A stretch of DNA of 64,000 nt from the sequence record KT919972.1; one strand, given 5' to 3'. Shown in pieces: positions 15,251-53,047 of this stretch. The position numbers were made by a program, and so were the translations under genes. The stretch's first letter is position 1; each line of letters starts with the position of its first letter. The notes beneath the pieces are model-generated. The model was not told the DNA's origin. It ran no database searches and worked only from the letters and a program-made list of their open reading frames with translations.

Positions 15251-16138
15251 ATGATTATATTCGAGGGATATGACGCGCTATTTGAAGCGTTTGATAGAGC
15301 AGCGAATTATGACTGGCTGACCGACGACGAAGCGTTTTTTGAAATCGGCGGGACTATGTATAAGGCAATCATAACTAGCAAAGATGAAGCACGCGGACGC
15401 ATAATTGACGTTTCATTTATGTGGAAAAGACCAGATGGTCAGTATTCATATGAATTAAAGAAATCGGGCAACGCGAAAGATTCATTGATGGTAATGAGTA
15501 CGGTGCTTGCAGCTACGTTTGACAAGGCTAAACGAGAAAACCCAGATTACATTACATTCAGCGCATTTGCAGACCATGACGACAGAGATGCAAAGAAACG
15601 CTATAATCTTTACAAGCGCATGGCTGAACGATACGCAAAGCAGATGGACTATACTTTACAAACGCACGGGCGTATGTTTGTATTAAAAAACAACAACCCA
15701 TCTAATGAAATTAGACGACTACCTAATGATGGTATTAAAGTCGAAGATGAGATCACATATGTTGATTTCCCTAGAGTGAACGCATTCACGTGGGCGACGC
15801 TATTTGAGTGTGAACGACCTGGTGATTTTGAATTGGTTCGTATGACAAATGGGTTCGCTACAATCAAACGGGTTAATGATAAAACAGTTCAAATTAAAGC
15901 ATCAATCAATGGTAATAAATTTGATAACTTAGACACGGTTGAAATCTGGGAAAGTCTTCTAGGTACTATTATTGCTAAACCTGCATGGGGTGGTGATGGA
16001 GAAGCTGAATTACTAGAGAAGGGCGCGATTCTAGAAGATGGTAAAATGCTGATTCTTGACTACAACACACTGTATATGGTTGAAAAGGTAAGCGACTTTG
16101 AAGATGTTTGGGGTCATAGTCTTATTAGAGTTGAATAA
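15251..16138 (+). CDS. Putative internal head/injected protein, paralog family member
   Basis: MIIFEGYDALFEAFDR N-terminus; shares ITFSAF.D...KKR..LYKRMAER with the 50797/51250/52172 ORFs. Confidence 0.65.
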   Translation: MIIFEGYDALFEAFDRAANYDWLTDDEAFFEIGGTMYKAIITSKDEARGRIIDVSFMWKRPDGQYSYELKKSGNAKDSLMVMSTVLAATFDKAKRENPDYITFSAFADHDDRDAKKRYNLYKRMAERYAKQMDYTLQTHGRMFVLKNNNPSNEIRRLPNDGIKVEDEITYVDFPRVNAFTWATLFECERPGDFELVRMTNGFATIKRVNDKTVQIKASINGNKFDNLDTVEIWESLLGTIIAKPAWGGDGEAELLEKGAILEDGKMLILDYNTLYMVEKVSDFEDVWGHSLIRVE

Positions 16139-16164
16139 AAAAGGGAGCAATTTGCTCCCTTTTT
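16137..16164. terminator. Bidirectional intrinsic terminator
   Basis: aaaaaagggagc-aattt-gctcccttttt between convergent genes. Confidence 0.85.
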
Positions 16165-16167
16165 CGA

Positions 16168-17796
16168 TCATGGTGTTAGAGGACTACGCTCTTTTGTTAG
16201 TCTATCTGCATCGATATCTACATCAACAGAACGCATGAAATTAGCTACTTCTGAAAGCTCGTGTAAACGGTCTTGCTTTTTGAAAGCAGACAATACACCT
16301 TGCTTCGTATCTTCTTTGATTTTCAATCGAATTACAGCGTCGTATTCAGACATTTGAACAACGTCAGCTTCAAACATCGTATTACGGTTGATGATAATCT
16401 CTTTTGAGTCTTTCATACCGTGTTTACCTGAAGCTAAAACAGGCAAGCCGCTCGCTTCTATGATGAATACAACATTCATTTTCTTATCTGACTCAAGCAG
16501 AGAACGCATATCTGATTTACTATTCTTAGCAGTTGAATCAATGATGTTCTTAGAGCTTGATTCAACGAACTTACAAGCAACAAGAGGGTCGATTGACGTT
16601 GAGATAAACGCAGTCGAAACAAACGAGCCAGATTCAAGAATAGAGCGCACATGTTTACTTGACATTTCACAGCCACGATATAACGTCATTCCACCAGCAA
16701 TCATACCAGCTTCAGAAAACGCTTGGTCGATGCGTGAGACAATCTGTGATTCTTTATCAACACCCGTTCCGTGTAATAACTCTTCATTCACCTTCCATGA
16801 AAAACGAGTCGCGGAGTATCTAGCAATAGCAGCTTGTGTAAGTGACGATAGACCCGCAAATGAATCTTCCTGCATAAGTTGCAAAGAAAGACGTTCATAC
16901 TGACTTGCATGAGCACGTGAGCGAGATTCCATGATACTATTCAGAACGCTTTGAGGCTTCTTCGATTCGGCGATATATGAATTCAATGAAACTGCCACAG
17001 TTTCAAGATTCAAACTCATATCAATTAAACCTTTCGCAGCATTAGCAAGAACATGTTCATTGCTTTCATTCAATTGAGAACGAACAGACGAACTTACACG
17101 CGCTTCATATTGAGGCATTTGAAGAACATCATTTGGAACACGTGCAGCGGGGTTTTCTTCTACCCATTTACCTAGTACGTCATCTTCATAGTCGTCATAC
17201 GCAGCATCGGCAGTTACGATAATCGTTTTCTTGCTTGAAATATCAGTTTCGAGTGACATTTTTAACGCAATATCGTTAATTGTTTCTTCAGATGCTTCGA
17301 ATAGCTTATCGGCATTATACCCTGGTTTGGTTACAATAAAGAAGCTGTAATCTTGCGAAATTTCTTCACCACCCACGCCAATAATCTTAGTTGTATCACA
17401 GCCGTAACGTAGCTTTTTAAACAACGTTTTAACCCGCAAGTCGAACATCTTACCCGTACCTAGTTTCTGCACACGCATTGAAACGACATTCGCACGACGT
17501 TTGATCATGAAATCTTGAACCACTTTAACAATAGTTTGTTGAAGCTTTTGTTCATCTCCCATTTCACGAATAGTAACACCGCCTTTTTTGCCGCGCATTG
17601 CTGATACAGTACAGAACCAAGAACGTTTACCGCGATTTCCGATATCTGATTTTGTTTTAGTTGTGAACGAAACAACGATGTCTCTGGCTTCGCCTTTCAT
17701 GTCGATCACAAAGAATTTGTTTTCTTTGGTCGAGCGAGCCGGATAATAGTCGTACGTTGCGCTCATGTTTTCATTTAATTGTTGAAATCCAATCAT
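16168..17796 (-). CDS. alt: Alt-like ADP-ribosyltransferase (R-S-E clade)
   Basis: C-terminal TLYRG, FISTS and KEIIINRN motifs; N-terminus MIGFQQLNE; late-promoter-like motif upstream. Confidence 0.75.
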   Translation of the reverse strand: MIGFQQLNENMSATYDYYPARSTKENKFFVIDMKGEARDIVVSFTTKTKSDIGNRGKRSWFCTVSAMRGKKGGVTIREMGDEQKLQQTIVKVVQDFMIKRRANVVSMRVQKLGTGKMFDLRVKTLFKKLRYGCDTTKIIGVGGEEISQDYSFFIVTKPGYNADKLFEASEETINDIALKMSLETDISSKKTIIVTADAAYDDYEDDVLGKWVEENPAARVPNDVLQMPQYEARVSSSVRSQLNESNEHVLANAAKGLIDMSLNLETVAVSLNSYIAESKKPQSVLNSIMESRSRAHASQYERLSLQLMQEDSFAGLSSLTQAAIARYSATRFSWKVNEELLHGTGVDKESQIVSRIDQAFSEAGMIAGGMTLYRGCEMSSKHVRSILESGSFVSTAFISTSIDPLVACKFVESSSKNIIDSTAKNSKSDMRSLLESDKKMNVVFIIEASGLPVLASGKHGMKDSKEIIINRNTMFEADVVQMSEYDAVIRLKIKEDTKQGVLSAFKKQDRLHELSEVANFMRSVDVDIDADRLTKERSPLTP

Positions 17797-17828
17797 TTTT
17801 ATAGACTCACCCTTTAGAAATATATGTG

Positions 17829-17836
17829 TATTTATG
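17829..17836 (-). promoter_or_regulatory. Late-promoter-like motif for the alt-like gene
   Basis: CATAAATA on the minus strand (1 mismatch to TATAAATA). Confidence 0.6.
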
Positions 17837-17887
17837 ATTGCTCATAACACCCGTTGAAATTATTTTAAACTTTTTGTCAGAAAAAGG

Positions 17888-17955
17888 TTGCTTTGTTTTC
17901 GTTTTAACCATATTATAGCTTCATCGAAACGAATTAACGAACAGAGAGAATAATT
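17888..17955 (+). promoter_or_regulatory. Class I early promoter plus conserved leader
   Basis: GG-TTGCTT-N17-TATTAT-AGCTTCATCGAAACGA...AGAGAGAATAATT. Confidence 0.8.
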
Positions 17956-18462
17956 ATGAATGTACAATCACTGACTAACGAACAACTTGCAGCACGTTAC
18001 AACATGACAGTAGACTCAAACGGCTTTCAAGCTGTTGATGATAAAGGTCGTCGTCATTATCTAACAGACTTGCGTCAGAAAGCGATGAAAGAAGCTAAGA
18101 CGAAACGTACTTCAAAAGTTAAAGCAGCGGCAAGCAAAATCGCTTTACCAACCGCAGAAGAGAACTTAGCGCGTCTGAACGGTGATTTTACTGAACATCA
18201 ATGGTTTATTCGTGAATCTCAGCCGGGTCTTGATATTGAAGAATTAGGTCTGCGATTCTACTTTATTGGTGGTCACGAACGTCATCAATTGAACATTCGT
18301 ACAAAGCACTTCAGTAACAAAGAGTTGAATAACTTTTACGCTGACAAAAAGATTCTGAAAGCTCACAAAGGTACAGGTTCAATCACAATCGGTTCTCTGA
18401 GTTATGATGAAGTAGTCGAAATTGCTAACGATATCATCGAAAAGAGCAAAAACGAGATCTAA
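17956..18462 (+). CDS. Hypothetical early protein
   Basis: First ORF after an early promoter. Confidence 0.75.
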   Translation: MNVQSLTNEQLAARYNMTVDSNGFQAVDDKGRRHYLTDLRQKAMKEAKTKRTSKVKAAASKIALPTAEENLARLNGDFTEHQWFIRESQPGLDIEELGLRFYFIGGHERHQLNIRTKHFSNKELNNFYADKKILKAHKGTGSITIGSLSYDEVVEIANDIIEKSKNEI

Positions 18463-18483
18463 ATCACGAAAAAAGTAGTTTTA

Positions 18484-18516
18484 GGGATTGACAATAACAC
18501 GTCAATCCCCGATAAT
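18484..18516 (+). promoter_or_regulatory. Early promoter within an inverted repeat
   Basis: TTGACA-N17-GATAAT; gggattgac / gtcaatccc. Confidence 0.75.
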
Positions 18517-18560
18517 AAACACATCAAGACGAGATACGAACTACTTAAAGAGAGAACATT

Positions 18561-19376
18561 ATGACAATCACTAAAGCAGAAATGAAAGCTATCGCAATCG
18601 ACCTTATGTCTGGTAACAACTTGATGAAGCGCGATCTGATTGCAGAAGGTTGGTCATTTGAATTTTCAAAACGTAAAGCTGCACTAGGTGATTGTAACTA
18701 CCGTACTAAAACGCTACGTATTTCTGAAGAATTCTTGAACGCTCGTACTAAAGAAGAGCAAATCAACACAATCACTCACGAAATGGCTCATGCGATTGCT
18801 TACACTGATTACAACGAACGTGGTCACGGTGCTATCTGGAAGCGTGTACACCGTCAACTAGGTGGCGATGCAAAGCGTTGCTCAACCGTATCTAACCCTG
18901 ATGCTGTAGATAGCAAGTACGTTGTTTTCTTCGAAAACGCTCAAGGTGAACTTGAAGTAGTTCAGAAAATGGATCGTTTGACTAAGCGTTTTCAACCAGT
19001 ACACATCAAGGCTCTATACTTGAAAGGTCGTAAAGCTGAAACTGAAGGTCAACTTCGTTGCGTTGCAACATCAACATTCAACGCTATCAAAGCAGATCAC
19101 GAAGCTAAGAAAGCTGAAAATACTAAAGCAGTTGAACCTGTAGCAGCACCTGCACCGAAAGCTGAAGCGCCTAAGCCTGCTAAGAAAGTAAACGCACGTG
19201 GTCAAGCTGCTCGTGACGCAATCGCAGAAATCGTAATGAATACTACTCACAAAGGTTGTAAGTCAGTGTCATTTGAACAGCGTGGTAAATACAAAGATTG
19301 GTACATCATTATTGAACTAGAAGCTCACACAATCGAAAAGCGTCTAGACACTTTCAAAAAATCTCACGGTTTATAA
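18561..19376 (+). CDS. SprT-like zinc metalloprotease
   Basis: FSKRKAALGDC, ITHEMAHA, HG..WK motifs. Confidence 0.8.
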   Translation: MTITKAEMKAIAIDLMSGNNLMKRDLIAEGWSFEFSKRKAALGDCNYRTKTLRISEEFLNARTKEEQINTITHEMAHAIAYTDYNERGHGAIWKRVHRQLGGDAKRCSTVSNPDAVDSKYVVFFENAQGELEVVQKMDRLTKRFQPVHIKALYLKGRKAETEGQLRCVATSTFNAIKADHEAKKAENTKAVEPVAAPAPKAEAPKPAKKVNARGQAARDAIAEIVMNTTHKGCKSVSFEQRGKYKDWYIIIELEAHTIEKRLDTFKKSHGL

Positions 19377-19395
19377 CATTGTTGTTCTCTTTATA

Positions 19396-19416
19396 GCCCC
19401 GAAAGGGGCTTTTTTT
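19396..19416 (+). terminator. Intrinsic terminator
   Basis: agcccc-gaaa-ggggctttttt. Confidence 0.85.
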
Positions 19417-19444
19417 GGTTTGAGCGGAAAAATTCCGTCTCATC

Positions 19445-19489
19445 TTAGTAGTATTAGTGCTTTTAGTAATATTAGAAGTATTAGTAAGA
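19445..19489. repeat. Five tandem imperfect 9-bp repeats
   Basis: ttagtagta|ttagtgctt|ttagtaata|ttagaagta|ttagtaaga. Confidence 0.75.
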
Positions 19490-19492
19490 TTT

Positions 19493-19522
19493 GTTTAATA
19501 ACCACCTTGGCAGACGTATAAT
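19493..19522 (+). promoter_or_regulatory. Class II promoter
   Basis: G-TTTAAT-N17-TATAAT. Confidence 0.65.
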
Positions 19523-19540
19523 ATAGGTCGAGGTGAAGAA

Positions 19541-19780
19541 ATGATAACGATATACACAATTCCCAACTGTGACGGCTGTCGTCACGCAATTTCCCTCTGT
19601 AAGTTCAAAAACGTCCCGTACACTGTAATAGAGTTACAGTCTCAATCTGATATCGATAAATTGCATGAGAAACTTGGTGGGGTGCGCAACATTCGCGTGC
19701 CTCTTGCTATGCATGGTGATACATACATAGGTCATCTTCCAGAACTCAAGCAATGGGTTGATAACCAGACATATAAATAA
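19541..19780 (+). CDS. Glutaredoxin (NrdC/NrdH-like)
   Basis: IYTIPNCDGC CxxC; VP...IG. Confidence 0.85.
   Translation: MITIYTIPNCDGCRHAISLCKFKNVPYTVIELQSQSDIDKLHEKLGGVRNIRVPLAMHGDTYIGHLPELKQWVDNQTYK
19772..19779 (+). promoter_or_regulatory. T4-type late promoter
   Basis: Perfect TATAAATA upstream of gene 24. Confidence 0.85.
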
Positions 19781-19835
19781 AAGAAAATAACATTCTCTCC
19801 GCTGAAATGCGGCAATAAATTAAAGGAATCATACA

Positions 19836-20735
19836 ATGACTGTATCTAATAGTAACGGTTTACCAGACATTGTTTCTGTTCAAAAACGACTATACCCGTT
19901 AATATTTACGCAAATCGTTTCAGAACAGCCAACAACTCAACCGGTTGCGACTGCGTTCGGTTTCAAATCTGTAGCTGAAGCTGATGACGCGAGTGGGTGG
20001 CTGCCACATGGTTTTAGACTTGATCGCTGGTATGCACAAGTTCAATCATCAAAGCTAAAAACTGAAATCTCACTTGAAACAATTCAAGACATGCAAGCAC
20101 TTGGTGTCAATGAATCGATTATCACAGATTCTATTGCTGATCAAATCGCAGATGACATCAACACTAATATCATCGATGCACTAAACAGTATTTCAACTGT
20201 TGGTAGTGCAATTACGCTATCTGCTATTACTAACCGTTTTGATAAAGGTCGAGAATTATACTCGTTCGTCCATGCATCTGCTGCTGAGATTGAAAAGTCA
20301 ACGGGTTGTACAGGTACATATATCGTAGCAGGTGGTGAAGCATTTGGTCTATTGACGGGCACTGGTATGGCTACACAGATTGGTGATACTAGCATGTATA
20401 AATGTGACTCTGGGTTATATCTAGTTCATGACAAGTATGCAACGACTGACTACGTAACAATTGGTGTTAAGAAAGAACTTGGTGATTATGAAATCTCAAG
20501 TTTAGTATTCAGCCCATACAACTTTGACAAAGCAACAGACGCTGGTATTGCATATCAATATAAAACACAAGACTCAAAATCATTCCACCCAATTTACGGT
20601 GTGATTGCTCGATACGCATTGACCGTAGCCCCATTAGAAGACAATCAAACGGGTGCAGTTGAAATCGACTGGGATAATCTTGGTGTTCTTGCGAACAGTT
20701 CTAAGCTGTCATACACTCACGCAGTAACGGTATAA
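19836..20735 (+). CDS. gp24: Capsid vertex protein
   Basis: LIFTQIVSEQPTTQPVA, RW...SSKLKTEISLE.IQDM, IADDINT.II, LVFSPY: HK97-fold gp23/gp24 signatures. Confidence 0.85.
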   Translation: MTVSNSNGLPDIVSVQKRLYPLIFTQIVSEQPTTQPVATAFGFKSVAEADDASGWLPHGFRLDRWYAQVQSSKLKTEISLETIQDMQALGVNESIITDSIADQIADDINTNIIDALNSISTVGSAITLSAITNRFDKGRELYSFVHASAAEIEKSTGCTGTYIVAGGEAFGLLTGTGMATQIGDTSMYKCDSGLYLVHDKYATTDYVTIGVKKELGDYEISSLVFSPYNFDKATDAGIAYQYKTQDSKSFHPIYGVIARYALTVAPLEDNQTGAVEIDWDNLGVLANSSKLSYTHAVTV

Positions 20736-20743
20736 GGTGTGAC

Positions 20744-21256
20744 ATGAAAAATCATTATGTAGATAATAAAGCTCTGTACGCATCTTTGTGCGAATGGAAA
20801 AACGAAATGAAGAAACACCCTGATGCTGCAATTCCCGTCCCTGACGTGGTAGCAATCAGTATCATGAAGATTAGCGAGAATTTATCTCGCCGTTACAATT
20901 TTAGTGGGTATACTGCAACATGGAAAGAAGAGATGATCGGTGACGCGATTGAACATTGCTTGCGCTATATCAAGAACTTCGACACTGACAAGTATAACAA
21001 CCCACACGCTTATATCACTCGTATTTGCTTCAATGCGTTTGTACAACGTATTAAGAAAGAAAGAAAAGATACAGCGATTAAATATAAAGTATTCTTATGT
21101 GATTCGTCTAACTACTCGATTGATGGTGAAGAAACTGATTTCGATTTTCTTCAACAGATGTTAGAACGTGTCAATTCTTACGAATCTGGCAAGACTGCTA
21201 AAGCTCAACCAGATGAACAGAAAGAACCACTTAACTTACAGAAATTTTACGATTAA
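20744..21256 (+). CDS. gp55: Late transcription sigma factor
   Basis: HYVDNK.L...W, RYNFSGYT..WKEEMIGDA, NPHAYITRICFNAFVQRIKKE. Confidence 0.95.
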   Translation: MKNHYVDNKALYASLCEWKNEMKKHPDAAIPVPDVVAISIMKISENLSRRYNFSGYTATWKEEMIGDAIEHCLRYIKNFDTDKYNNPHAYITRICFNAFVQRIKKERKDTAIKYKVFLCDSSNYSIDGEETDFDFLQQMLERVNSYESGKTAKAQPDEQKEPLNLQKFYD

Positions 21257-21265
21257 GGAATTAAC

Positions 21266-22711: not shown

Positions 22712-22718
22712 GTGTACA

Positions 22719-23366: not shown

Positions 23367-23383
23367 TTTGAAATTATTTGAAT

Positions 23384-23727: not shown

Positions 23728-23751
23728 CTGCTCGTATTTGTTAGATATAAT
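23722..23751 (+). promoter_or_regulatory. Class II promoter
   Basis: G-TTTAAC-N17-TATAAT. Confidence 0.7.
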
Positions 23752-39695: not shown

Positions 39696-40247
39696 ATGAT
39701 TGAATTATCAGTAACAGTAGCGGCAATCTTGTTTGTATTGTTTGTAATTTACATGTACAAACGTGCGGCAGACAAGCAAAAAGCAGAAAACGCGAAGTCG
39801 ATGCGTGAACAAGCAAACCCTGACATTCTCGACCGTCTGCGTGACCGCGATGCAAAAGAACTTCGTTCGTTGAATGGTACATCAAGCAATGCAAAATCTC
39901 GCGTGACTCATTCAGTGCGTCATAATGTACCAAAAACTCAATCACTGTCGCGTACTTCTCGTAAGCGTCGTGAAGATGATGACATCGTGACAAATCCGCT
40001 GCATCCCTTAAACCCGATTACTGACCCTGTAGGTCTGTATTCAGATGACGAGCCAGCACGCTCACGACCTGAACCAAGCTACTCTGCTCCTGAGCCGAGT
40101 TACAGCGAACCAGAGCGCGTGTCTAGCCCGGGTAGTTACTCATTCGGTGGTAGTTCTGACAGCTCTTCAAGCTACTCAAGTTCGAGTGATAGTGGTTCAA
40201 GCTACTCAAGCAGCGATAGCAGTTCTGGTGGTGGGAGCTTTGACTAA
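39696..40247 (+). CDS. Membrane-anchored protein with a Ser/Gly-rich tail
   Basis: N-terminal TM; PEPSYS x2; SSSDSGSSYSSSDSSSGGG. Confidence 0.7.
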   Translation: MIELSVTVAAILFVLFVIYMYKRAADKQKAENAKSMREQANPDILDRLRDRDAKELRSLNGTSSNAKSRVTHSVRHNVPKTQSLSRTSRKRREDDDIVTNPLHPLNPITDPVGLYSDDEPARSRPEPSYSAPEPSYSEPERVSSPGSYSFGGSSDSSSSYSSSSDSGSSYSSSDSSSGGGSFD

Positions 40248-40759
40248 TGATTGTATCTGAGATTCGTGGCGATTTAGTCGCCACTCTCGCTCACGCGATT
40301 GAAAACCCTAATCATCAACGCACTTTTATCATGGGACAAGGTTGTAACTGTTTTATCAGACAAGGTGCAGGTATTGCAGGTCAATTACGACGTTTCCCCG
40401 AAGTTTACCAAGCTGATATCGACTTCGGTCGTAGCGGTGACCCACTGAAGCTAGGTGAATACTCGGTTGCGTTGTTTGATGACCACGGAACTGTCCCTCA
40501 AGCTGTTGTGTTTAACATGTACACACAGTTCAGCATGGGTACGAAAGAGAGACACGCTGAATACTCTGCAATTGCTGAATCTGTGCGTGGTATCGTTCGC
40601 TATCTTGAAGGCAATGACGATAAAATCTACTTACCTCTTATTGGTGCGGGTCTAGCGGGTGGTGATTGGGAAATTATTCGTGATATCATCGACCGTGCAA
40701 GCGGTAGTAAAGAAATCGTTATTGTTCATTTTGAAGAAGATAAATTAATCGACTGGTGA
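40247..40759 (+). CDS. Macrodomain (ADP-ribose hydrolase-like, T4 Tk.4/DarG type)
   Basis: IRGDL, GCNCF..QGAGIA, FNMYTQ, PLIGAGLAGGDW..I. Confidence 0.88.
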   Translation: MIVSEIRGDLVATLAHAIENPNHQRTFIMGQGCNCFIRQGAGIAGQLRRFPEVYQADIDFGRSGDPLKLGEYSVALFDDHGTVPQAVVFNMYTQFSMGTKERHAEYSAIAESVRGIVRYLEGNDDKIYLPLIGAGLAGGDWEIIRDIIDRASGSKEIVIVHFEEDKLIDW

Positions 40760-41737: not shown

Positions 41738-41767
41738 AAATCCCGTCTTAACCGACGGGATTTTTTT
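41738..41767 (+). terminator. Intrinsic terminator
   Basis: aaatcccgtc-ttaacc-gacgggatttttttt. Confidence 0.85.
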
Positions 41768-41773: not shown

Positions 41774-41781
41774 TCTAAATA
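41774..41781 (+). promoter_or_regulatory. Late-promoter-like motif
   Basis: TCTAAATA (1 mismatch to TATAAATA). Confidence 0.6.
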
Positions 41782-41809: not shown

Positions 41810-43261
41810 ATGAAACAATTTAACGAATTTTATCAAGAAGTTCGCCTTGATGAGATTTCTGACCGTGCGAATATAGACATTGATTGGGATTGGGGGCATG
41901 AGAACGGTACAGGCGAGACTTCAGCGCGATTCAACGCAGCGGGGGAAGGATTCTCGGTTAGCGTAGACGAAAGCAACCCTGGTTATTTCTCAATCACATT
42001 CCAAAACTCAGGTGGCTATGCTCAGACAGGTAAAGCAGGACACTCTGCGGCTGCGGTATTCTCTGGTGTATTGACGACTCTACGTGAATTCACCGAGACG
42101 TATGAAGAAGAAATGGGCATGAAGCCGTATGAATATGACTTCAGCGCAGCGTACGAGCTACCAGCAAATCATGAGTACTACGCACTGAATAACAATCGAC
42201 GCGAAGCAACTCGCTTAGACGAAGAAAGTAAGAAAAAGCTATTGAAAGACTTGATTTCCCGTCCAATGCTGTACTACGCACTGTCACTGACTTTCGGTAA
42301 AGAATATGGCTATTCGACTGAGATTAGCGACCGCTGGCTTGCACGTCTAGCAGGTGGTGCAAACGATTTCCGTTCTGTTCGTAAGAACGTGACGCGCAGC
42401 ATTCTTTCAATGAGCGACAGCGACGTTAACCAAGCGTTGATGAGTATGAGCGGTTCAGTTTCGTTTACTCTTACCAATGAACACGAACGTCCTAGCAGCT
42501 ACGACACTGCATTCGGTGGCGGTCCGTCTCTTGAAGATTACGTCGATGAAGCAGATCAATACCAAATCGAAGCATGGATCAATGAAGGTCGTGAAGATGA
42601 AATCATTGAACACGCAGATTGGCAAACTCTAGTTCGTATTGCTAGTTGGGGTCTGATGCACGAAGAGCTGATTTTCCATGATGACGAAGACGTTCGTAAT
42701 GCAGTTATTGCCTCTGATTACGAAATGGGTGAGAAACTTGCAACATCTGATGAAGGGGAACATCGTAAGCAAGCTGCTGAAAATGGTTTTGCTATCTGGG
42801 ATCTTGTTCTTGACTCGGACGAGGACGTGCGAGAAGCGGCATGGGAATGGTCTTTCGAGAACGACGACGCAGATACACGTATCACATATGCGAAACGCTA
42901 CGAAAGTGAATTCGGTCGTGATATGGCAGAAGATATCTGGGATAGAATGGTCGATGATACAGATGATTACGAAGAACGCCAATACGTAGCCGAGCAAGGT
43001 TATCGAGTTGATGAACTTCTAGCAGACCATGACGAAGATGTTCGCGAATCTGCAATTGGTGCGGTATTTAACGTACTGGGGTTAGAGGGTCGCGAAGCTG
43101 CTGAGTTCTTGATGAATAACTCAGATCCATATCAAGAAGAAGTGTTTGAATACGCTATAAATGGTAACTTCGGTCCGTCATTTGATGAAGCACTTATTGA
43201 GCTTGCTGAAGAAAACGGCGTTGATGTATCTGAGTACAAAGACGACGAAGACGAAGAATAA
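41810..43261 (+). CDS. Candidate internal head protein with an acidic HEAT/LRV-like repeat C-terminus
   Basis: MKQFNEFYQEVRLDE; repeats HDDEDVRNAV, DSDEDVREAA, DHDEDVRESA. Confidence 0.65.
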   Translation: MKQFNEFYQEVRLDEISDRANIDIDWDWGHENGTGETSARFNAAGEGFSVSVDESNPGYFSITFQNSGGYAQTGKAGHSAAAVFSGVLTTLREFTETYEEEMGMKPYEYDFSAAYELPANHEYYALNNNRREATRLDEESKKKLLKDLISRPMLYYALSLTFGKEYGYSTEISDRWLARLAGGANDFRSVRKNVTRSILSMSDSDVNQALMSMSGSVSFTLTNEHERPSSYDTAFGGGPSLEDYVDEADQYQIEAWINEGREDEIIEHADWQTLVRIASWGLMHEELIFHDDEDVRNAVIASDYEMGEKLATSDEGEHRKQAAENGFAIWDLVLDSDEDVREAAWEWSFENDDADTRITYAKRYESEFGRDMAEDIWDRMVDDTDDYEERQYVAEQGYRVDELLADHDEDVRESAIGAVFNVLGLEGREAAEFLMNNSDPYQEEVFEYAINGNFGPSFDEALIELAEENGVDVSEYKDDEDEE

Positions 43262-44232: not shown

Positions 44233-44233
44233 T

Positions 44234-44654: not shown

Positions 44655-44666
44655 TAGAGAGAAAAC

Positions 44667-45287: not shown

Positions 45288-45310
45288 AAAAGGGGCTTTC
45301 GCCCCTTTTT
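45288..45310. terminator. Bidirectional intrinsic terminator
   Basis: aaaaggggc-tttc-gccccttttt between convergent genes. Confidence 0.85.
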
Positions 45311-46364
45311 ATGGTCGGTAAATCATGTGATTCGACCCCATTCTCTCCCACGTACCTAGATTCATGCGATTGCGCATTTCAGCGAATAATGCTGGGTTTG
45401 CTCGTATGTCATCGAGTGGTAGTGCAACGACACCTTCAGTTTTATGTGCTAGTAGCTCAAGTTTATCTAGTAAATCACTAGAGTTGCGACCGTCGTATTT
45501 AAACTGACTAAACCAATAACCAATCTTACTAAATTTCTGATCTCTGGTGTATCTTACATCAAATCCTTTCAACGAATACTTCAAACTACTTTCTTTACCT
45601 TTGAACGGCTGTCTCGACTCGCTGTGTTCAGCACCCGCACGTGAGATCAATCGTTTCTTAGCATCACTTGGTATATTTTCCCACCCATCAAAGTTGTGTT
45701 TAAATCGATTAATCCATGCCTGAGCAGTAGCTGGTGAATTTTTAAAATCTGCTTTAGTATCAGCGATAGCTTGAGCATAACGAGCGTTTATCTCATGCGA
45801 ATAGTTCTGATATTCGTCGTGAGTCGCTTTGTGTCCGCTTTTAGCGTGACGGATGAACTCTTTGTCGATGTAAGCTCTATTGCGCCCTGAGTGTTGATAC
45901 ACACCCTCTTCGTCGCGTGTCTCGAAGTCTTCTATATCACCAGAACGCCAGTTATCATAAGCATGTTGCAGTTCATGCAATGCAGTGCTGTACATTTGCT
46001 CTTTCTTGACTCTAAACTTAGCCATAATCTGACTCACCGCAGTAACACCGGTTATATCAACGGTGATTTGCAAGTTCCCTGCTTCACCTGCTTCTGGGTC
46101 GTGTAAAGCACCGCGCCAAACACCCATTTCGGTTGGGTTTTGGTTATCAAGTTTAAGATAAGCAACGATACCACGCGCAAGAAGCGCATCGAACTCAGTT
46201 TCACCAGTTTTGATGTTCAGATTCTTGGTATTAAGTGCGAGTTTGTTCGGGTCGAATGGTGGGCTACTCAGAGCAGCTTCTAATTGTGTTTCAAGCTTAT
46301 CGACGATAAACTTAGATGCGTACTCTAATGCACGCTGCGATTGAACGCTTTCAAAAATAATCAT
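45309..46364 (-). CDS. Zincin-like metallopeptidase, candidate injected protein
   Basis: ALHELQHAYD plus downstream Y.N..HEINAR; N-terminus MIIFESVQSQRALE; minus-strand CCTAAATA upstream. Confidence 0.7.
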   Translation of the reverse strand: MIIFESVQSQRALEYASKFIVDKLETQLEAALSSPPFDPNKLALNTKNLNIKTGETEFDALLARGIVAYLKLDNQNPTEMGVWRGALHDPEAGEAGNLQITVDITGVTAVSQIMAKFRVKKEQMYSTALHELQHAYDNWRSGDIEDFETRDEEGVYQHSGRNRAYIDKEFIRHAKSGHKATHDEYQNYSHEINARYAQAIADTKADFKNSPATAQAWINRFKHNFDGWENIPSDAKKRLISRAGAEHSESRQPFKGKESSLKYSLKGFDVRYTRDQKFSKIGYWFSQFKYDGRNSSDLLDKLELLAHKTEGVVALPLDDIRANPALFAEMRNRMNLGTWERMGSNHMIYRP

Positions 46365-46382
46365 CTTTTTTCTCGAATTCGG

Positions 46383-46441
46383 TTGACTGTATTACTTATT
46401 TAGGTTAATATCTATCGCATCGAAACGAAAGAGAGAACACT
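46383..46441 (+). promoter_or_regulatory. Early promoter and leader overlapping a divergent late-promoter-like motif
   Basis: GG-TTGACT-N18-TAATAT; CATCGAAACGA; minus-strand TAAATA inside the spacer (46398-46403). Confidence 0.65.
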
Positions 46442-47137: not shown

Positions 47138-47139
47138 TC

Positions 47140-47532: not shown

Positions 47533-47536
47533 TCTC

Positions 47537-47776
47537 ATGGGCGAATTTTTATTTCTTATGTTCATTATCACGTTTGTAATTTCAAACATCATCGCGATTT
47601 TCATGGGTCTGCATATAATATTCGAACGAACATACAATATACCCATGATTATGGTCATGTTATATGGCTTCATCGGTACGCTACTCGTAGCAACTGTCAT
47701 GTCTATTCTGTTCGTCTTATGTAAAATCGAAGAAACAGAATTTTGGCGAAAAATTTCTAAAATGAGGGAAATCTAA
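47537..47776 (+). CDS. Small membrane protein
   Basis: Two hydrophobic segments. Confidence 0.6.
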   Translation: MGEFLFLMFIITFVISNIIAIFMGLHIIFERTYNIPMIMVMLYGFIGTLLVATVMSILFVLCKIEETEFWRKISKMREI

Positions 47777-47886
47777 TGAAAAACATTATTCTAGTAGATC
47801 ATAAAGAACCGACGACTGCAATCGCCGTCAAATGTGATGTAGTTGAGCAGAAACAATATTTCGACTTAGAGATACGTGGACTATGA
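47776..47886 (+). CDS. 36-aa hypothetical peptide
   Basis: GAGG RBS; start and stop overlap both neighbours. Confidence 0.45.
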   Translation: MKNIILVDHKEPTTAIAVKCDVVEQKQYFDLEIRGL

Positions 47887-48164
47887 GTTTTGAAACAAAG
47901 ATTGTATGTTACGGTGCACTTGTAACAGAAGTTGAGCATGGTTGGGGTTCTCGCCCAGACGGCTACATCATTGCGAAAAGCGAAGCTGAGGTGCTTAAAA
48001 AAGGCGCTGAAATGCGAGAAATCGCTTCTAAGTCGAAGTACGGTTATGAATATATCGGTGAAGTGTTCACATTTGAACCAACTCAAAAGGCTATCGATAA
48101 GTTAACTGATAACGAGTTTGTTTGGACTGGTCGAGACTTCTCTGAATGGGGCAAGCGAATTTAA
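47883..48164 (+). CDS. Hypothetical protein
   Basis: TEVEHGWGSRPDGY. Confidence 0.7.
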   Translation: MSFETKIVCYGALVTEVEHGWGSRPDGYIIAKSEAEVLKKGAEMREIASKSKYGYEYIGEVFTFEPTQKAIDKLTDNEFVWTGRDFSEWGKRI

Positions 48165-48172
48165 AAATATTA

Positions 48173-48216
48173 TGAAACTAGTTTAATATCAACGACATGA
48201 TGTTATACTAGTTTCA
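48173..48216 (+). promoter_or_regulatory. Class II promoter inside a long inverted repeat
   Basis: G-TTTAAT-N16-TATACT; tgaaactagt (48173-82) / actagtttca (48207-16). Confidence 0.6.
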
Positions 48217-48293
48217 CATTGCAGCAATGTACTGCAATTCGCGTCTGGTTAGGTTGTACAGATAAAATAAAACTTAAAAATAATAGGTATAAA

Positions 48294-49670
48294 ATGAAAA
48301 AACTTTGGCTTTCATTAGCATTGTTATGTTCTACAGCGTCAACAACAGCGGCTACATTCACGGGACTACCTGCTGAGGGTGTTGAAACCCCGAGTCCTTT
48401 CACAACTGAGTTCACGTTCCCTTACATGACGAACGGCTATCATAACTCAGTGTTACGTACTTGGTTAAACAGCGCGATGCAAGAAGCAGACGCTGAATAT
48501 AAGAAAACAGGTGAAATCAGTCAGACCGTTAACAGTACTTACATTTCGATGGATAGTAACGGTTACGGGTTCTGGAAAGATTCAACTGACATGCGTACAA
48601 TGTCACCGAGTGATGACATGCGTGCTCTTAGTACACTTGCTATGGCACCATTGAAATGGGCGTGTTCGGTATCTGGTAGCGCATGTTTCGACAGCGGTTT
48701 TGAGTACTCGCTTCGTATGAATGCAGACTCAAGTAAGTTTGATGTGAATGGCTCGCTTGATGTGGGTTGGGCTAACTTACGTCGCGAGAGCTGTCGCTAT
48801 CAGCTCGGTAAGCGTGTATGTTACACAGTAAACGACATGAACTACGGTGGTGACCTAGCGGGCTTCTGGATCAAAGCGTTGAACTGGTTGAATACGACTG
48901 AAGATCTATCAAACATCAAGACATCAATTGACCAAGCGACCAAGACGTTTGACCGCCCTTACTTGATGGTTAATGCAACGTTAATCCCGGGCATGGGTGG
49001 TGATGGTAATCTATCATACTTCCACATGGCAGACTCTAAGTGGTGGGAAACATGGCAAAAGCAAGTGAACTCGAACTCAGTTCAAGTTGGTTACAAACTA
49101 GCCTTAATTGAACCGATTCTGACTGGTAACAGTTCTGGTCTATATCAGACATACTCACCGCAGACTGACGATCTACGAAACTTCCCGCACTTGGAAGGTC
49201 GTATTCCACTGTATGAATACAGCTCAGTACGTGCAATTGAGATTTTGAAGATGCAGCGTGAAAACGCATTGATCGGCGCGTCGATGAAAGCATATGCAGG
49301 GTTCAATAACAACTTCGAGTCGTGCCGTGCGAACATGATCATGACAGGCGATGAAGGTTACTTACCTGCACCTGGTTATTCAGGTGGCGTCACTTCAATT
49401 TACGGTGTTGCACCGTCATACGACGAACACACAACCTTTGCGATTTTCGCATGGGCGGCAAACACCAAGTCTGAGTCGAAGATGTACGATCTTGCAAACT
49501 ACGACCACAACACTCGCGTATTCTTACACGAAATCGGTCATAACTACGGCTACGGTCATAACTCAACACCGAACACAGATCAATACTGGAAAGATTTGAG
49601 CGAAGAGCGTGTTCCGTACGTACGCTCTAAGATTGATAAGGGCGAACATTGCGGTGGGCGCGTACTTTAA
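48294..49670 (+). CDS. Exported zinc metalloprotease-like protein
   Basis: Sec-type signal MKKLWLSLALLCSTASTTAA; C-terminal HEIGHNYGYGH (HExxHxxGxxH). Confidence 0.75.
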   Translation: MKKLWLSLALLCSTASTTAATFTGLPAEGVETPSPFTTEFTFPYMTNGYHNSVLRTWLNSAMQEADAEYKKTGEISQTVNSTYISMDSNGYGFWKDSTDMRTMSPSDDMRALSTLAMAPLKWACSVSGSACFDSGFEYSLRMNADSSKFDVNGSLDVGWANLRRESCRYQLGKRVCYTVNDMNYGGDLAGFWIKALNWLNTTEDLSNIKTSIDQATKTFDRPYLMVNATLIPGMGGDGNLSYFHMADSKWWETWQKQVNSNSVQVGYKLALIEPILTGNSSGLYQTYSPQTDDLRNFPHLEGRIPLYEYSSVRAIEILKMQRENALIGASMKAYAGFNNNFESCRANMIMTGDEGYLPAPGYSGGVTSIYGVAPSYDEHTTFAIFAWAANTKSESKMYDLANYDHNTRVFLHEIGHNYGYGHNSTPNTDQYWKDLSEERVPYVRSKIDKGEHCGGRVL

Positions 49671-49892
49671 TGATTTAGTGGCGGCGATTGTCGCCACTCT
49701 AAAACGAGGTTATTATGAGAAAGCATGAAATACGAGATATGGTTGAACGTCAAGGGTTCATTCTGAACGAAGAAATTGACGAACACAATCAATCACTCTG
49801 GCAGATAAAAGACAACGGTCAAGTTGTTTACGAATCGTATAATGAATATTGCCTTGAGGCATTTCTCAAAGGTGTTAGATATTCAGAACAGT

Positions 49893-49914
49893 AAGCGCCT
49901 TTATGGCGCTTTTT
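49893..49914 (+). terminator. Probable intrinsic terminator
   Basis: aagcgcc-tttat-ggcgcttttt. Confidence 0.6.
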
Positions 49915-49923
49915 GAGGTTATT

Positions 49924-50229
49924 ATGAGACGACAAATCAATAGAATGAAAAACGATAATGGTGATTTCGAGCGTTATATGCGCACGCAAGCAGCTAGATA
50001 CGCTCGAAGAGAGATCATCAACAATATAGCCGATGACAATGACATCTTCTTAGTCGGTTCTTACACGATGTACAAAGATTGTGATGAAAAGGTTGTTCTT
50101 CAGCTTGTACGATACGCAGGTTACGAGCGTGCTGAAGTTAAAGCAGTGCCGATTGTCGGTAGTCTTGTTGATTGTGTTAATGTCATTCACGGTGTTGGGT
50201 TTAGAGTGGTGCTAAATAATGATAGTTAA
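49924..50229 (+). CDS. Hypothetical protein
   Basis: GAGG RBS. Confidence 0.65.
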   Translation: MRRQINRMKNDNGDFERYMRTQAARYARREIINNIADDNDIFLVGSYTMYKDCDEKVVLQLVRYAGYERAEVKAVPIVGSLVDCVNVIHGVGFRVVLNNDS

Positions 50230-50503
50230 CATTGCTCATCATTCTTTTGATGTGTACATTGGTCGCGGCACCCCGTTTGGGAACCCATTTAAATCAGGGA
50301 TTGACGGTACTCGAAGCGAAGTTATTGAGCTTTATCGCGAGTGGTTACGCATTCAATTACAAGACGACGAATTTAAAAAGCAGTTTATGCAACTAAAAGG
50401 AAAGATTCTCGGCTGTCATTGTAAGCCTAAAGCGTGTCATGGTGATGTAATATTAGAAGAACTTGATAGATTGAGCAGCCCATTAAACAATTTTATAGGT
50501 TAA
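50219..50503 (+). CDS. DUF4326-like protein
   Basis: DVYIGRG..FGNPF, LKGK.LGC.C.P..CHGDV. Confidence 0.85.
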   Translation: MIVNIAHHSFDVYIGRGTPFGNPFKSGIDGTRSEVIELYREWLRIQLQDDEFKKQFMQLKGKILGCHCKPKACHGDVILEELDRLSSPLNNFIG

Positions 50504-50506
50504 TCT

Positions 50507-50800
50507 ATGAGAGAAGCAATTGCATTATTGAAAAACACGAAGATGAGTTATACGGACATTAGCGCATTCGGCGACCCCGTAGTATATGTTCATGCAGGTC
50601 ATGAAACGATTTTGAAAGTAGAATACACTGAAGATTGCTACTCATTTTTCGATTACAGAAGCAAGTACCTCTATACTGAACAATCAATCGACGACTTAGA
50701 AATACATTTAAAATCAATAGATGTCGGTCTTGACGACGATCTACCATTGAATGGTAATATCGACAAAGACACGATACCCGACGGGGAATTTTTAGAATGA
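50507..50800 (+). CDS. Hypothetical protein
   Basis: ORF. Confidence 0.65.
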   Translation: MREAIALLKNTKMSYTDISAFGDPVVYVHAGHETILKVEYTEDCYSFFDYRSKYLYTEQSIDDLEIHLKSIDVGLDDDLPLNGNIDKDTIPDGEFLE

Positions 50801-51246
50801 AATTTAGCGAATATCAAAACGAGCTAACAGAAGCATTTGACCGACCAGCACAGATCACAGCACGTCGTGGAAATAAGAGCTTTTTTAACGTCGGTGACAA
50901 ACGTTACATCGTCGAACTCGCATATGAAGAATACGATAAATCTATAAATGTTGAGTTTATGTATATGTCCAGAGAATCACTAACATGGAGCTATAATCTC
51001 GCGAAAGGCGATGCTAGAGACGCGATTACAGTTTTTGCAACTGTTATATCTGAAATTGAAGAATTAATGCGTAGCAAAGATGTAAATTATATACATTTCA
51101 ACGCATTTAGCGATTCGAACGCGGATGATTATCGTAAGAGACTTAGTGTATACAAACGTATTGCAAAACGATTTGCTGATGAACTTGGGTTTAAGGTTGT
51201 GTATGACATGGGTTCTATTTCACTTGAAAGACTTGATAAAAGGTAG
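50797..51246 (+). CDS. Putative internal head/injected protein, paralog family (shared domain only)
   Basis: MKFSEYQNELTEAFDRPA. Confidence 0.65.
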   Translation: MKFSEYQNELTEAFDRPAQITARRGNKSFFNVGDKRYIVELAYEEYDKSINVEFMYMSRESLTWSYNLAKGDARDAITVFATVISEIEELMRSKDVNYIHFNAFSDSNADDYRKRLSVYKRIAKRFADELGFKVVYDMGSISLERLDKR

Positions 51247-51249
51247 AAA

Positions 51250-52170
51250 ATGAAATTTAGCGAATATCAAAGACTCAACGAGTCGTTAGATCGACCAGCG
51301 AAATATAATCTCGTCCGTGAGTTACCAAATTTAAACGTGTATGAGTTTCAAGTTGATGGTGTTTATTATGAAATAGACATTCAGAAAGGCATTATACGTG
51401 AACCGAACGGGATGAAGTCTATGAAGGCTGATGTGTCGTTCAAAGCTCTTGATGGTAGTGGTTATAATCTAACTAAGAAAGATGATAAAACAGCACGAGT
51501 CGTATTATCAACGGTTGTCGATGCGATTTTCAGTTTTGTTAGAGACAATTCACCTGCTCAAATAACATATAGCGCGTTCAATGACGCTGATCAGCGTGAT
51601 GCAGATAAACGTCTCAGACTGTATAAGATCATGACAAAGGCGAAACTTAGAGAATTCCCTCAGTATGATTACAGAAACGTAGGTCGTGAATTCATTGTGT
51701 ATGATGTGGGTTATCAACAACGTGTAGATGACTTTTCACGTCGAGCACGTCGTCCAGTCGGGTTTGAAGAACATAGCGACCATGTTGAAGTTAATTTATC
51801 TCACGCCAATGCATATGCATTTGTAAGAGCGTTTGAAGTTGAAGATGGTTCGATGATTAGTGGTGTTCTAGGGCAAGGTCGTGCAGTTGTAAAAGCGGCT
51901 GACGAAATTGCAGCTAGGTTACGTGTAAATCGCGTTGTGTATGAAATGTCTGACCGAGAGGGATGGTTAGCAGCACTACAGCACCCAATTTTCGACTATG
52001 GTGAGGGTCCTGAAGAAGATAGAACATATCTGGTTGGTGCATTCAAGAACTTCTATATCGTCTTGACTAGTCAAACAAGTCTAAAAATATACACCGACGA
52101 TGCAGCGTTTACCAAATATGTGAATGCATTCGATGCGCCGTGGTTAAACCCAGAAATAATGGAATCTTAA
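51250..52170 (+). CDS. Putative internal head/injected protein, paralog family plus unique C-domain
   Basis: MKFSEYQRLNESLDRPA; ITYSAF.D...DKRLRLYK. Confidence 0.65.
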   Translation: MKFSEYQRLNESLDRPAKYNLVRELPNLNVYEFQVDGVYYEIDIQKGIIREPNGMKSMKADVSFKALDGSGYNLTKKDDKTARVVLSTVVDAIFSFVRDNSPAQITYSAFNDADQRDADKRLRLYKIMTKAKLREFPQYDYRNVGREFIVYDVGYQQRVDDFSRRARRPVGFEEHSDHVEVNLSHANAYAFVRAFEVEDGSMISGVLGQGRAVVKAADEIAARLRVNRVVYEMSDREGWLAALQHPIFDYGEGPEEDRTYLVGAFKNFYIVLTSQTSLKIYTDDAAFTKYVNAFDAPWLNPEIMES

Positions 52171-52171
52171 A

Positions 52172-53047
52172 ATGAAATTTAGCGAATATCAAAACGAGCT
52201 AACAGAAGCGTTTAACCGCGCTGCACCCATAACAGCACGCCGTGGTAATCAGAGTTACTTCGAAATAGACGGCGCAGAGTATATGATTGGTCTGTATTAT
52301 GAAGAAGATCGCAAAGCTCTAGGTGTCGATTTTATGTATAAGCCAGCGGGTGCAATGTCTTACAGTTACAGCCTAGCAAAGGGTGATTCTAAAGACGCGA
52401 TGACTGTTTTCGCCACGGTTATTTCTGAAATTAAGCACGTGATGCAAAACAACATCGTAAATCGAATCACATTTGCAGCATTTGATGACACAAATCGTTC
52501 TGATTCCCGTAAGCGTACTCGATTATACAAAAGAATGGCTGAACGATTTGCCAAAGATTTAGGTTTCAAATTGAGAGTATCAAATGAATCTGAAGGTGCG
52601 TCATTCGTGATGGAAAGAATCGTTCCTATTGAAGACCCAAAGCCTGTTCACACTGATAACCCGACTGGATATGATACAGAAATGGGAACTGAATTGCTCG
52701 ATTTACCTACAATCAACGACGCTGCTATTGTTAAAGTAACGGGTGGTGATGGTATTTGGTATCTTCGTGGCGGTCACTCGTTAAACATCGAAGCTGGTAT
52801 TGTTGAACTTTCGCCAGGTAGCATCAATGATGATGTTGCTTGGTATAAATCATTTTACACGTTAGAGTGGTATTATGAACCTGAAGACGAGCTTTTCTAC
52901 GATGATGAGCAACGTATAGCAATGATTTCTGGTAAGATCTGGGTAATCAATGGAAATGAGATCACCGTTTGGAGTGATGTTAGTTCTCTTGAAGCCCAAA
53001 GTGATTCGAAATTGAGTCAAACAACGTTAGAACGAATTGGTGCTTAA
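52172..53047 (+). CDS. Putative internal head/injected protein, paralog family plus unique acidic C-domain
   Basis: MKFSEYQNELTEAFNRAA; first 38 nt identical to the 50797 gene. Confidence 0.65.
   Translation: MKFSEYQNELTEAFNRAAPITARRGNQSYFEIDGAEYMIGLYYEEDRKALGVDFMYKPAGAMSYSYSLAKGDSKDAMTVFATVISEIKHVMQNNIVNRITFAAFDDTNRSDSRKRTRLYKRMAERFAKDLGFKLRVSNESEGASFVMERIVPIEDPKPVHTDNPTGYDTEMGTELLDLPTINDAAIVKVTGGDGIWYLRGGHSLNIEAGIVELSPGSINDDVAWYKSFYTLEWYYEPEDELFYDDEQRIAMISGKIWVINGNEITVWSDVSSLEAQSDSKLSQTTLERIGA

Follow-up and report, generated by a model that had tools for sequence, protein, structure and literature searches.

A stretch of 64,000 nucleotides from sequence record KT919972.1, referred to here as the window, was analyzed for a family of phage proteins that share a domain of about 140 amino acids. 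Across 50797-53047, the window shares 99.7% identity with the reverse strand of Vibrio phage ValKK3, 97–99% with phages phi-Grn1 and phi-ST2, and ~78% with KVP40. Its source is accordingly assigned to the KVP40-like, T4-type myoviruses of Vibrio (genus Schizotequatrovirus). One ancient alpha/beta domain is common to six genes of the window, named here by their first position (15251, 50797, 51250, 52172 and 41810) or, in the case of the sixth, by its likeness to T4 alt; the copy in Alt is a probable one. The domain-bearing genes under study are all labelled “hypothetical protein” in the ValKK3, phi-Grn1, phi-ST2 and KVP40 records.

Gene 15251 (15251-16138, plus strand) lies between the DNA ligase gene (gp30) and alt and is the orthologue of KVP40.0058. 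It encodes paralog A, 295 amino acids long, with an N-terminal domain (N-domain) at residues 1-147 (15251-15691) and a C-terminal domain (C-domain) at residues 160-295 (15728-16135). A trio of genes on the same strand lies further downstream. The first, 50797-51246, encodes a protein of 149 amino acids (phrog_27801) that consists of the domain alone. It is followed by paralog B (51250-52170; 306 amino acids; orthologue of KVP40.0115), with an N-domain at residues 1-145 (51250-51684) and a C-domain at about residues 150-306 (51697-52167), and by paralog C (52172-53047; 291 amino acids; orthologue of KVP40.0116), with the two domains at residues 1-140 (52172-52591) and 146-291 (52607-53044). Gene 41810 (41810-43261, plus strand; orthologue of KVP40.0097) encodes a distant paralog of 483 amino acids (phrog_13195) in which a diverged N-domain at residues 7-175 (41828-42334), interrupted by an insertion after strand 5 and before helix 4, is accompanied by an acidic, HEAT-like repeat region at residues 240-483 (42527-43258). 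The Alt-like ADP-ribosyltransferase (ART) is encoded on the minus strand (16168-17796; 542 amino acids; Pfam ADPrib_exo_Tox; phrog_802), and has its ART domain at residues 317-495 (16312-16848) and a probable N-domain resembling the Pfam family DUF6934 at residues 5-131 (17404-17784).

A preliminary description of the window had listed the open reading frames (ORFs) 15251-16138, 50797-51246, 51250-52170 and 52172-53047, had assigned them a common N-domain of ~140 amino acids, and had taken 50797 to be the domain alone. These points were all confirmed. The four N-domains share 23 invariant alignment columns, and pairwise BLASTP among them gave expectation (E) values from 1e-13 to 2e-56 at 32–58% identity. 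A broad hidden Markov model (HMM) of the domain, comprising 242 domain instances and built without 41810 and Alt, was used to scan all of the 426 stop-to-stop ORFs that the window contains. It found the four paralogs at E 1e-26 to 1e-31, 41810 (residues 7-175) at E 2e-10, and the Alt-like gene 16168-17796 on the minus strand (residues ~5-105) at E 0.0024, with the next-best ORF at E 2.7. In the case of 41810, alignment of the protein and two orthologues with the domain by hhalign gave 98% (E 2e-12; reversed control, 0.9%). The copy in 41810 is invisible both to pairwise BLAST and to an HMM of the four sequences. The distant version of the domain that the preliminary description proposed for this protein is therefore real, though the evidence available to that description could not have shown it. 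The acidic repeats that it reported there are also present, the C-terminal half being very acidic, with at least three HEAT-like repeat motifs. Likewise, the faint similarity noted at the Alt N-terminus is weak but probably real, as judged by the window HMM scan, hhalign and Foldseek. The paralogous domain family thus stands, with 41810 and the Alt N-terminus included.

A seventh domain-bearing gene was found in ValKK3 beyond the span of the window, the ValKK3 genome outside that span having been scanned except for ~3 kb adjoining rIIA. This gene, ORF276 (KP671755.1, 146811-147731; 306 amino acids; phrog_16075), has the domain C-terminally and matches the broad domain HMM more strongly than any other (E 5e-34). 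A second ORF of 483 amino acids lies at 48219-49670, 6 kb from 41810-43261. The two were considered as paralogs and rejected as such (BLASTP E 0.16); the program-made ORF list starts 48219-49670 at a TTG codon, and the product annotated in ValKK3 is shorter.

Beyond the N-domain, paralogs A, B and C carry C-termini that the preliminary description thought unrelated to each other, and pairwise BLASTP among the three indeed finds no similarity. Orthologues of the C-domains were aligned as type A (that of 15251), type B (51250) and type C (52172). The type B profile found every type A member (E 2e-7 to 1e-3) and most type C members (E 7e-6 to 0.1). By hhalign, A and B matched at 92%, B and C at 60%, and A and C at 11%, all colinearly, as compared with 0.1% for reversed controls. 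In a joint alignment of 20 C-domain sequences, columns of G, G and W are invariant and one of N is nearly so. AlphaFold models of the C-domains are confident by the predicted local distance difference test (pLDDT), with >90 for 15251 and 91.4 for 52172, the latter with a predicted template modelling (pTM) score of 0.83. Both models show the same order of elements: two strands, a helix, three or four strands, a helix, four strands, a helix and a strand. An alignment of 293 columns (E 1e-18) also links the 15251 model to a protein of 279 amino acids, the length of the type C group, and in PHROGs all three proteins match phrog_6387 over its full length, positions 1-301 (E 1e-113 to 1e-125). The C-termini are therefore unrelated only to pairwise BLAST; the profiles, the AlphaFold models and the invariant residues do not bear out the earlier impression. 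A degenerate second copy of the N-domain was also considered for the C-terminal halves, because many relatives of ~300 amino acids are tandem pairs, and was rejected since the halves do not match the 242-instance domain HMM.

The C-domain gave no match in the Protein Data Bank (PDB) by Foldseek (best E 0.19, probability <=0.08). Searches of Pfam and NCBIfam with the C-termini gave no toxin or enzyme family and none of known activity. The C-domain was also not seen elsewhere among the 155 proteins collected in the searches or among the ORFs of the window. Orthologues are present as exactly one per genome, in 48 phage records for type A, 25 for type B and 48 for type C, and no sign of immunity genes was found. 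Because the C-domains are homologous and each type has one orthologue per genome, whole-gene duplication, rather than an exchange of payloads, accounts for the three genes. By profile and by predicted structure, 15251, 51250 and 52172 are diverged whole-gene duplicates of one two-domain gene, composed of the N-domain and a beta-rich C-domain.

The domain family evolves fast. Between this phage and the distant phage 1.081.O, the DNA ligase retains 77% protein identity, as compared with 39% for type A, 34% for type B, 38% for type C, 49% for the 41810 type and 47% for Alt. Comparison with phage VH7D showed 98–100% DNA identity through the ligase gene and alt, and 44–66% exactly across gene 15251 (15230-16140). 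The type A proteins of this phage and VH7D are 47% identical (51% in the N-domain and 44% in the C-domain), the VH7D allele is 71% identical to that of KVP40, and the allele nearest to that of the ValKK3 type is only ~50% identical to it. The confinement of this island of divergence to 15251, together with the likeness of the VH7D allele to that of KVP40, indicates by sequence comparison that it was the ValKK3-type lineage that took up a foreign allele, spanning the entire gene and both of its domains, a result that is new here. Internal-protein loci are polymorphic in T-even phages, and the allele replacement at 15251 recalls such polymorphism.

The trio shows further signs of recent change. 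The domain-only protein 50797 is 58% identical to the N-domain of 52172. The gene is present in ValKK3, phi-Grn1 and phi-ST2, and no such gene is found in the KVP40 annotation. Phages VH7D, R10Z, R11Z and PVA23 align over 84% of the trio (three genes there), which is consistent with the absence of 50797 from them. Gene 50797 thus looks like a recent partial duplicate comprising the N-domain alone. Compared with KVP40, the adjacent paralogs B and C are 86% and 58% identical, respectively, and the C-domain of paralog C ~51%, which suggests a second mosaic boundary inside the trio.

The link to Alt was assessed with profiles of Alt N-termini. A profile of ten Vibrio Alt N-termini is colinear with the domain over residues 5-131 (hhalign 65–69%, E 6e-6 to 6e-5). 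A profile of eight T-even-type Alt N-termini, from phage T2, Klebsiella, Enterobacter, Yersinia and Aeromonas phages and two Acinetobacter phages (three proteins), matches it at 92% (E 7.5e-8, 123 columns; reversed control, 2.9%). Independently, Foldseek comparison of the 15251 AlphaFold model with BFVD gave six annotated Alt proteins at probability 1.0 (E 3e-4 to 1e-3). On the strength of these profile and structural matches, the N-terminal ~130–160 residues of Alt proteins, very probably including those of the Alt of the window, are a diverged member of the DUF6934-type domain family. No description of a domain at the Alt N-terminus was found in the literature searched for it, and the presence of this domain at the head of T-even-type Alt proteins is new here. 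In T4, ~40 copies of Alt reside in the scaffolding core, lose a short N-terminal peptide to gp21 and are ejected, and the way in which proteins localize to the core was called mysterious in a 2023 review (PMC9958956). The N-terminal region of Alt now gains a defined, widespread domain with extra stand-alone and two-domain copies in one phage, which makes the question of core localization approachable by descriptive means.

Tandem pairs of Alt-type genes occur elsewhere, namely gp210 and gp211 of phage T2 and alt.-1 and alt of Acinetobacter phage Ac42; the alt locus is thus a common site of duplication of domain-bearing genes beyond the phages of Vibrio, too. The 64 kb that hold alt also contain genes related to NAD and ADP-ribose, annotated in ValKK3 or KVP40 as a macro-domain protein (Tk.4-like), a NADAR-like homologue of 30.3 and a Sir2-like deacetylase, with 40247-40759 (plus strand) among them.

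Transcription signals were read from the sequence around these genes. Late promoters of T4 have TATAAATA at positions -13 to -6, and position -13 is reported to vary in KVP40 (PMC1524935). A perfect copy of TATAAATA at 15220-15227 (plus strand) ends 23 nucleotides before the ATG of 15251. Only one other exact copy exists in the 64 kb, and it ends 56 nucleotides before the head vertex gene gp24 (19836-20735). The shorter ATAAATA occurs just five times, with a third copy lying 33 nucleotides before alt. The TATAAATA before the orthologues of 15251 is kept in KVP40 and in the distant 1.081.O, with differing flanks, and in 1.081.O an extra gene is inserted upstream. After the DNA ligase gene, a hairpin with a T-run at 15189-15208 (plus strand) resembles an intrinsic terminator and would isolate 15251 from the upstream transcript; 1.081.O has an equivalent hairpin of different sequence at the same place. 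The conserved T4-type late promoter of 15251, a gene that adjoins alt, is also new here. The Alt gene itself is preceded, 33 nucleotides before its ATG, by the late-promoter-like CATAAATA at 17829-17836 (minus strand), which is conserved in KVP40 and 1.081.O.

In the case of 41810, a terminator-like hairpin and T-run at 41742-41767 are followed by TCTAAATA at 41774-41781 (plus strand), 28 nucleotides before the ATG. This TCTAAATA is a candidate late-type promoter, and the same pair of terminator and TCTAAATA stands before KVP40.0097. TCTAAATA also follows terminators before ValKK3 ORF270 and ORF275, the latter forming a two-gene unit with ORF276. No late-promoter motif was found for the trio 50797/51250/52172, whose genes are packed against those upstream. 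The trio is the last part of an operon in which its neighbours are small genes without known function and genes of nucleotide metabolism. The operon is closed by a strong terminator-like hairpin, readable in either orientation, at 53057-53082, 10 nucleotides after the stop codon of 52172. As far as these signals go, late transcription is predicted for 15251 by a conserved TATAAATA and may apply to 41810 by a candidate promoter, with none seen for the trio.

Two other parts of the window deserve mention. A gene at 45309-46364, one of three minus-strand genes among 102 rough gene calls in the window, encodes a protein of 351 amino acids (phrog_15811, no known family) and has CTAAATA, the motif that also stands before 41810, 32 nucleotides before it; it may be another late-type transcription unit. 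Beyond the trio, 54065-59330 (plus strand) begins with dCMP deaminase and continues, by the names of the ValKK3 record for the ORFs at 54572-59330, with a 6-pyruvoyl-tetrahydropterin synthase-like protein (54572-55504), GTP cyclohydrolase I (55572-56240), a 459-amino-acid protein of unknown function (56241-57620), a 7-cyano-7-deazaguanine reductase-like protein (57650-58558) and 7-cyano-7-deazaguanine synthase, which starts at ~58614 by ValKK3 coordinates and whose listed ORF extends to 59330. By these names, the genes form a 7-deazaguanine pathway, which presumably serves DNA or tRNA modification.

Relatives of the domain outside these phages were sought among 1.84 billion representative proteins by means of a profile built from the four N-domains. 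This search returned 730 relatives at E <= 1e-3. Of 18 large relatives scanned, 16 are clear DUF6934 proteins (38–163 bits; maximum, 162.6) with as many as five copies per chain. Among 35 aligned domain sequences, comprising 31 stand-alone relatives and the four N-domains of the window, 26 match DUF6934 at E <= 0.1. The four N-domains themselves give weak, colinear matches to Pfam DUF6934 (PF22028) of 13.6, 17.7, 17.9 and 16.9 bits, and the relatives retrieved by their profile pass the Pfam threshold, so that membership is established through intermediates. By these profile comparisons, the shared domain is a diverged member of the uncharacterized DUF6934 superfamily. A literature search on DUF6934 found one paper, with a passing mention.

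The best 150 of the 730 representatives hold one copy of the domain in 63 proteins, two in 62, three in 19, four in 4 and five in 2; 36 of the 63 single-copy proteins stand alone (<=200 amino acids), and 43 of the 150 are 600–2215 amino acids long. Partner domains in the relatives include GNAT (P0020, P0028, P0035 and P0086), a poly(A) polymerase head, amidoligase with gamma-glutamyl cyclotransferase (GGACT), DUF5661 and a weak ParB-like match. In BFVD, a zeta-toxin-domain protein also carries the domain, and the gene of one multi-domain relative sits on a 210-kb contig of a T4-like or jumbo phage. The preliminary description had envisaged a module with swappable partners, and the domain is indeed promiscuous: across phages it is joined to ART (Alt), GNAT, poly(A) polymerase, amidoligase with GGACT, a zeta-toxin-domain protein and HEAT-like repeats (41810). 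These results give a first context for DUF6934, in 730 representative clusters, as a phage-borne domain that is repeated, joined to host-directed enzymes and fast-evolving, with whole alleles exchanged between near-identical phages.

The full-length AlphaFold model of 15251 has a pLDDT of 90.5. Its N-domain consists of a helix (7-14), a short strand (20-22), three long antiparallel strands (27-59), a helix (75-96), a strand (100-104), a helix (111-131) and two strands (134-147). This predicted order of elements is consistent with that seen in GNATs, as a matter of order and not of superposition on a GNAT. Foldseek comparison of the model with the PDB gave nothing below E 1e-3, the two-domain query depressing the scores, and the sole high-probability matches are GNAT domains, those of ICL2 with acetyl-CoA and glyphosate N-acetyltransferase. 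A sequence search of the PDB with the domain profiles gave chance matches only, and NCBIfam gave nothing. Across the 242 instances, the near-invariant polar positions (15251 numbering) are E12, D/N15, the G-x-G-D/N loop before helix 3, T84, S/K116-R117 and Y121. These polar positions are equally conserved in N-terminal and internal copies, E12 being kept in 100 of 101 and 134 of 141, respectively. The standard GNAT motif, Q/R-x-x-G-x-G/A, is not present in the proteins of the window. If the fold order is a guide, the conserved polar residues would sit on the elements that form the GNAT cofactor site or cleft. The preliminary description had asked whether the domain was GNAT-like or the T4 Alt N-domain, and both guesses received some support, the former from fold order and marginal Foldseek matches and the latter from hhalign and Foldseek.

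Taken together, these results are best explained by a duplicated domain family whose members bind a ligand and are directed at the host, an explanation that, as a whole, we consider on balance probable. Most likely, the proteins are accessory ones that evolve fast, are directed at the host and have a ligand-binding, GNAT-like module as their basis. The domain would derive from GNAT and serve to bind a small ligand or some component of the host, and the proteins would act on the host, in take-over or counter-defence. The late-expressed members 15251, 41810 and Alt may enter the head and reach the host together with the phage DNA, in the manner of T4 Alt, and the trio would act from inside the infected cell. 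A host-directed binding module is favored because the polar set is kept even in multi-copy proteins, and because of the partner domains, the fast evolution and the allele exchange. The partner enzymes are typical of phage multi-domain conflict proteins, for which PMC5512222 gives background. The link to Alt together with the late promoters makes head packaging of 15251, 41810 and ORF276 a reasonable possibility. The inferred components taken jointly, that is, a GNAT-derived module binding a ligand or host component, in host-directed proteins of which the late members may be packaged in the head, make a tentative proposal and a less probable one than the explanation as a whole.

Several observations weigh against this reading. 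The likeness to GNAT is one of fold only, with Foldseek E values of 0.012–0.022, probabilities of 0.90–0.94 and template modelling (TM) scores of <=0.35, obtained with a two-domain query. The GNAT models of Pfam gave no match in the four proteins of the window or in the aligned stand-alone relatives. Matches by hhalign to four GNAT segments were rejected, as they involved only the tail of the preceding DUF6934 copy in the cut-outs. At the first G of the G-x-G loop, the four proteins of the window have K, where most of the family has G. The same four proteins miss the gathering score of Pfam DUF6934 (27 bits), and no DUF6934 protein has a known activity, ligand or target. As for late expression, the promoter variant of 41810 (C at -12) is absent before the 1.081.O orthologue, and a literature search found no virion proteome or expression data for KVP40-like phages.

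The alternative that survives best, and that we nevertheless consider unlikely, is that the domain is a carrier, in keeping with the carrier/ejection module of the preliminary description. It would place a protein in the scaffolding core of the prohead and thereby secure its packaging and its ejection along with the DNA, the rest of the protein being cargo. The domain heads Alt, and T4 Alt is located in the core by a mechanism that is not known, trimmed at its N-terminus and ejected (PMC9958956). The position of 15251 beside alt with a conserved late promoter, the candidate late-type promoters of 41810 and ValKK3 ORF275-276, the joining of the domain to many different enzymes in large phage proteins, and one Foldseek match annotated as a structural protein would all fit such a role. 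However, the trio has no late promoter and belongs to an operon of small unknown-function and nucleotide-metabolism genes, the domain occupies the C-terminus of ORF276 and in many proteins is internal or present in two to five copies, and the 36 stand-alone copies among the best 150 of 730 representatives are free of cargo. The operon context of the trio and the stand-alone and internal copies argue against a pure carrier role. The polar residues, equally conserved in internal copies, are more readily explained by a binding or active site than by a passive handle. The N-terminal (L/I/V)-x-E resembles the site of the T4 prohead protease, but it is kept equally in internal copies and is therefore part of the fold; its reading as a protease site that marks a detachable targeting peptide was rejected as a sole meaning, given the E retained in 134 of 141 internal copies.

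A more specific proposal, to which we give marginally less credence still, is that the DUF6934/Alt N-terminal domain is a localization device of T4-type heads that docks Alt, 15251, 41810 and ORF276 to the scaffolding core. If this were true, KVP40-like phages would inject a whole family of fast-evolving effectors, and thousands of metagenomic multi-copy DUF6934 proteins would be carriers of head-delivered cargo.

It is less likely again that all copies of the domain are genuine GNAT enzymes, active acyl-CoA-dependent acyltransferases that modify a host or phage molecule. The GNAT-like order of elements, the GNAT domains of ICL2 with acetyl-CoA and glyphosate N-acetyltransferase as the best high-probability PDB matches, and the conserved G-x-G-D/N loop before helix 3, S/K-R-x-x-L-Y in helix 4 and E12 would be in keeping with an enzyme, and repeated enzymatic domains in one polypeptide are known from phage polyvalent proteins (PMC5512222). 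However, no sequence profile links the domain to any GNAT family, the Foldseek scores are marginal, the four proteins of the window have K in place of the first loop G, and large proteins carry a canonical GNAT domain besides these copies, which suggests that the copies have a different role.

The polymorphic effector or toxin cassette of the preliminary description, in which a constant N-terminal module carries unrelated, exchangeable C-terminal toxins, is very improbable: the blindness of pairwise BLAST to the similarity of the three C-termini, the fast evolution and the allele exchange at one locus might have spoken for it, but the C-termini are homologous by profile, predicted fold and invariant residues, the very finding that the description itself had set against its proposal, while one orthologue of each type per genome in 25–48 phage records means that types are inherited and not shuffled, both domains were replaced together at the 15251 locus, the C-domains match no toxin or enzyme family in Pfam, NCBIfam or the PDB, and their conserved G, N, G and W are not a catalytic set. 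A tempting annotation as “polymorphic toxin” is thereby removed.

The reading of a host-directed binding module can be placed beside several known systems. In T4-type Alt, the head-packaged RNA polymerase ADP-ribosyltransferase (phrog_802), the N-terminal ~130–160 amino acids are colinear with the domain and match it structurally, and 15251, which adjoins alt, likewise has a late promoter. Unlike Alt, the paralogs have no ART domain, which is present only in ORF 16168-17796, and head packaging and processing are known features of T4 Alt only. The T4 internal head proteins IPI, IPII and IPIII are likewise small late phage proteins that evolve fast, look non-essential and are tied to the biology of Alt; no relation of sequence or fold was found between them and the paralogs, and, unlike the detachable targeting peptide of head proteins, the (L/I/V)-x-E of the paralogs belongs to the domain fold. 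The GNAT fold has an order of helices and strands with which the predicted model is consistent, and the conserved residues would lie on elements that bind the cofactor in GNATs, whereas the domain has no GNAT sequence signature or Pfam match and its structural scores are marginal. Pfam DUF6934 represents the same domain superfamily as the N-domains of the window. Unlike DUF6934 proper, the proteins of the window are a diverged phage branch (phrog_6387, phrog_27801 and phrog_16075), and three of the genes add a C-domain that is unseen with other DUF6934 proteins. The polyvalent proteins of phages and conjugative elements (Iyer et al. 2017, PMC5512222) offer the widest comparison: no passage on this domain was found in the portions of that paper around Alt, GNAT, KVP40 and T4 Alt, but distant relatives of the domain, often in multiple copies, occur in proteins of 600–2215 amino acids that also carry GNAT, poly(A) polymerase, amidoligase/GGACT and ParB-like domains, as polyvalent proteins do. 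Unlike these polyvalent proteins, the proteins of the window are small and consist of one or two domains.

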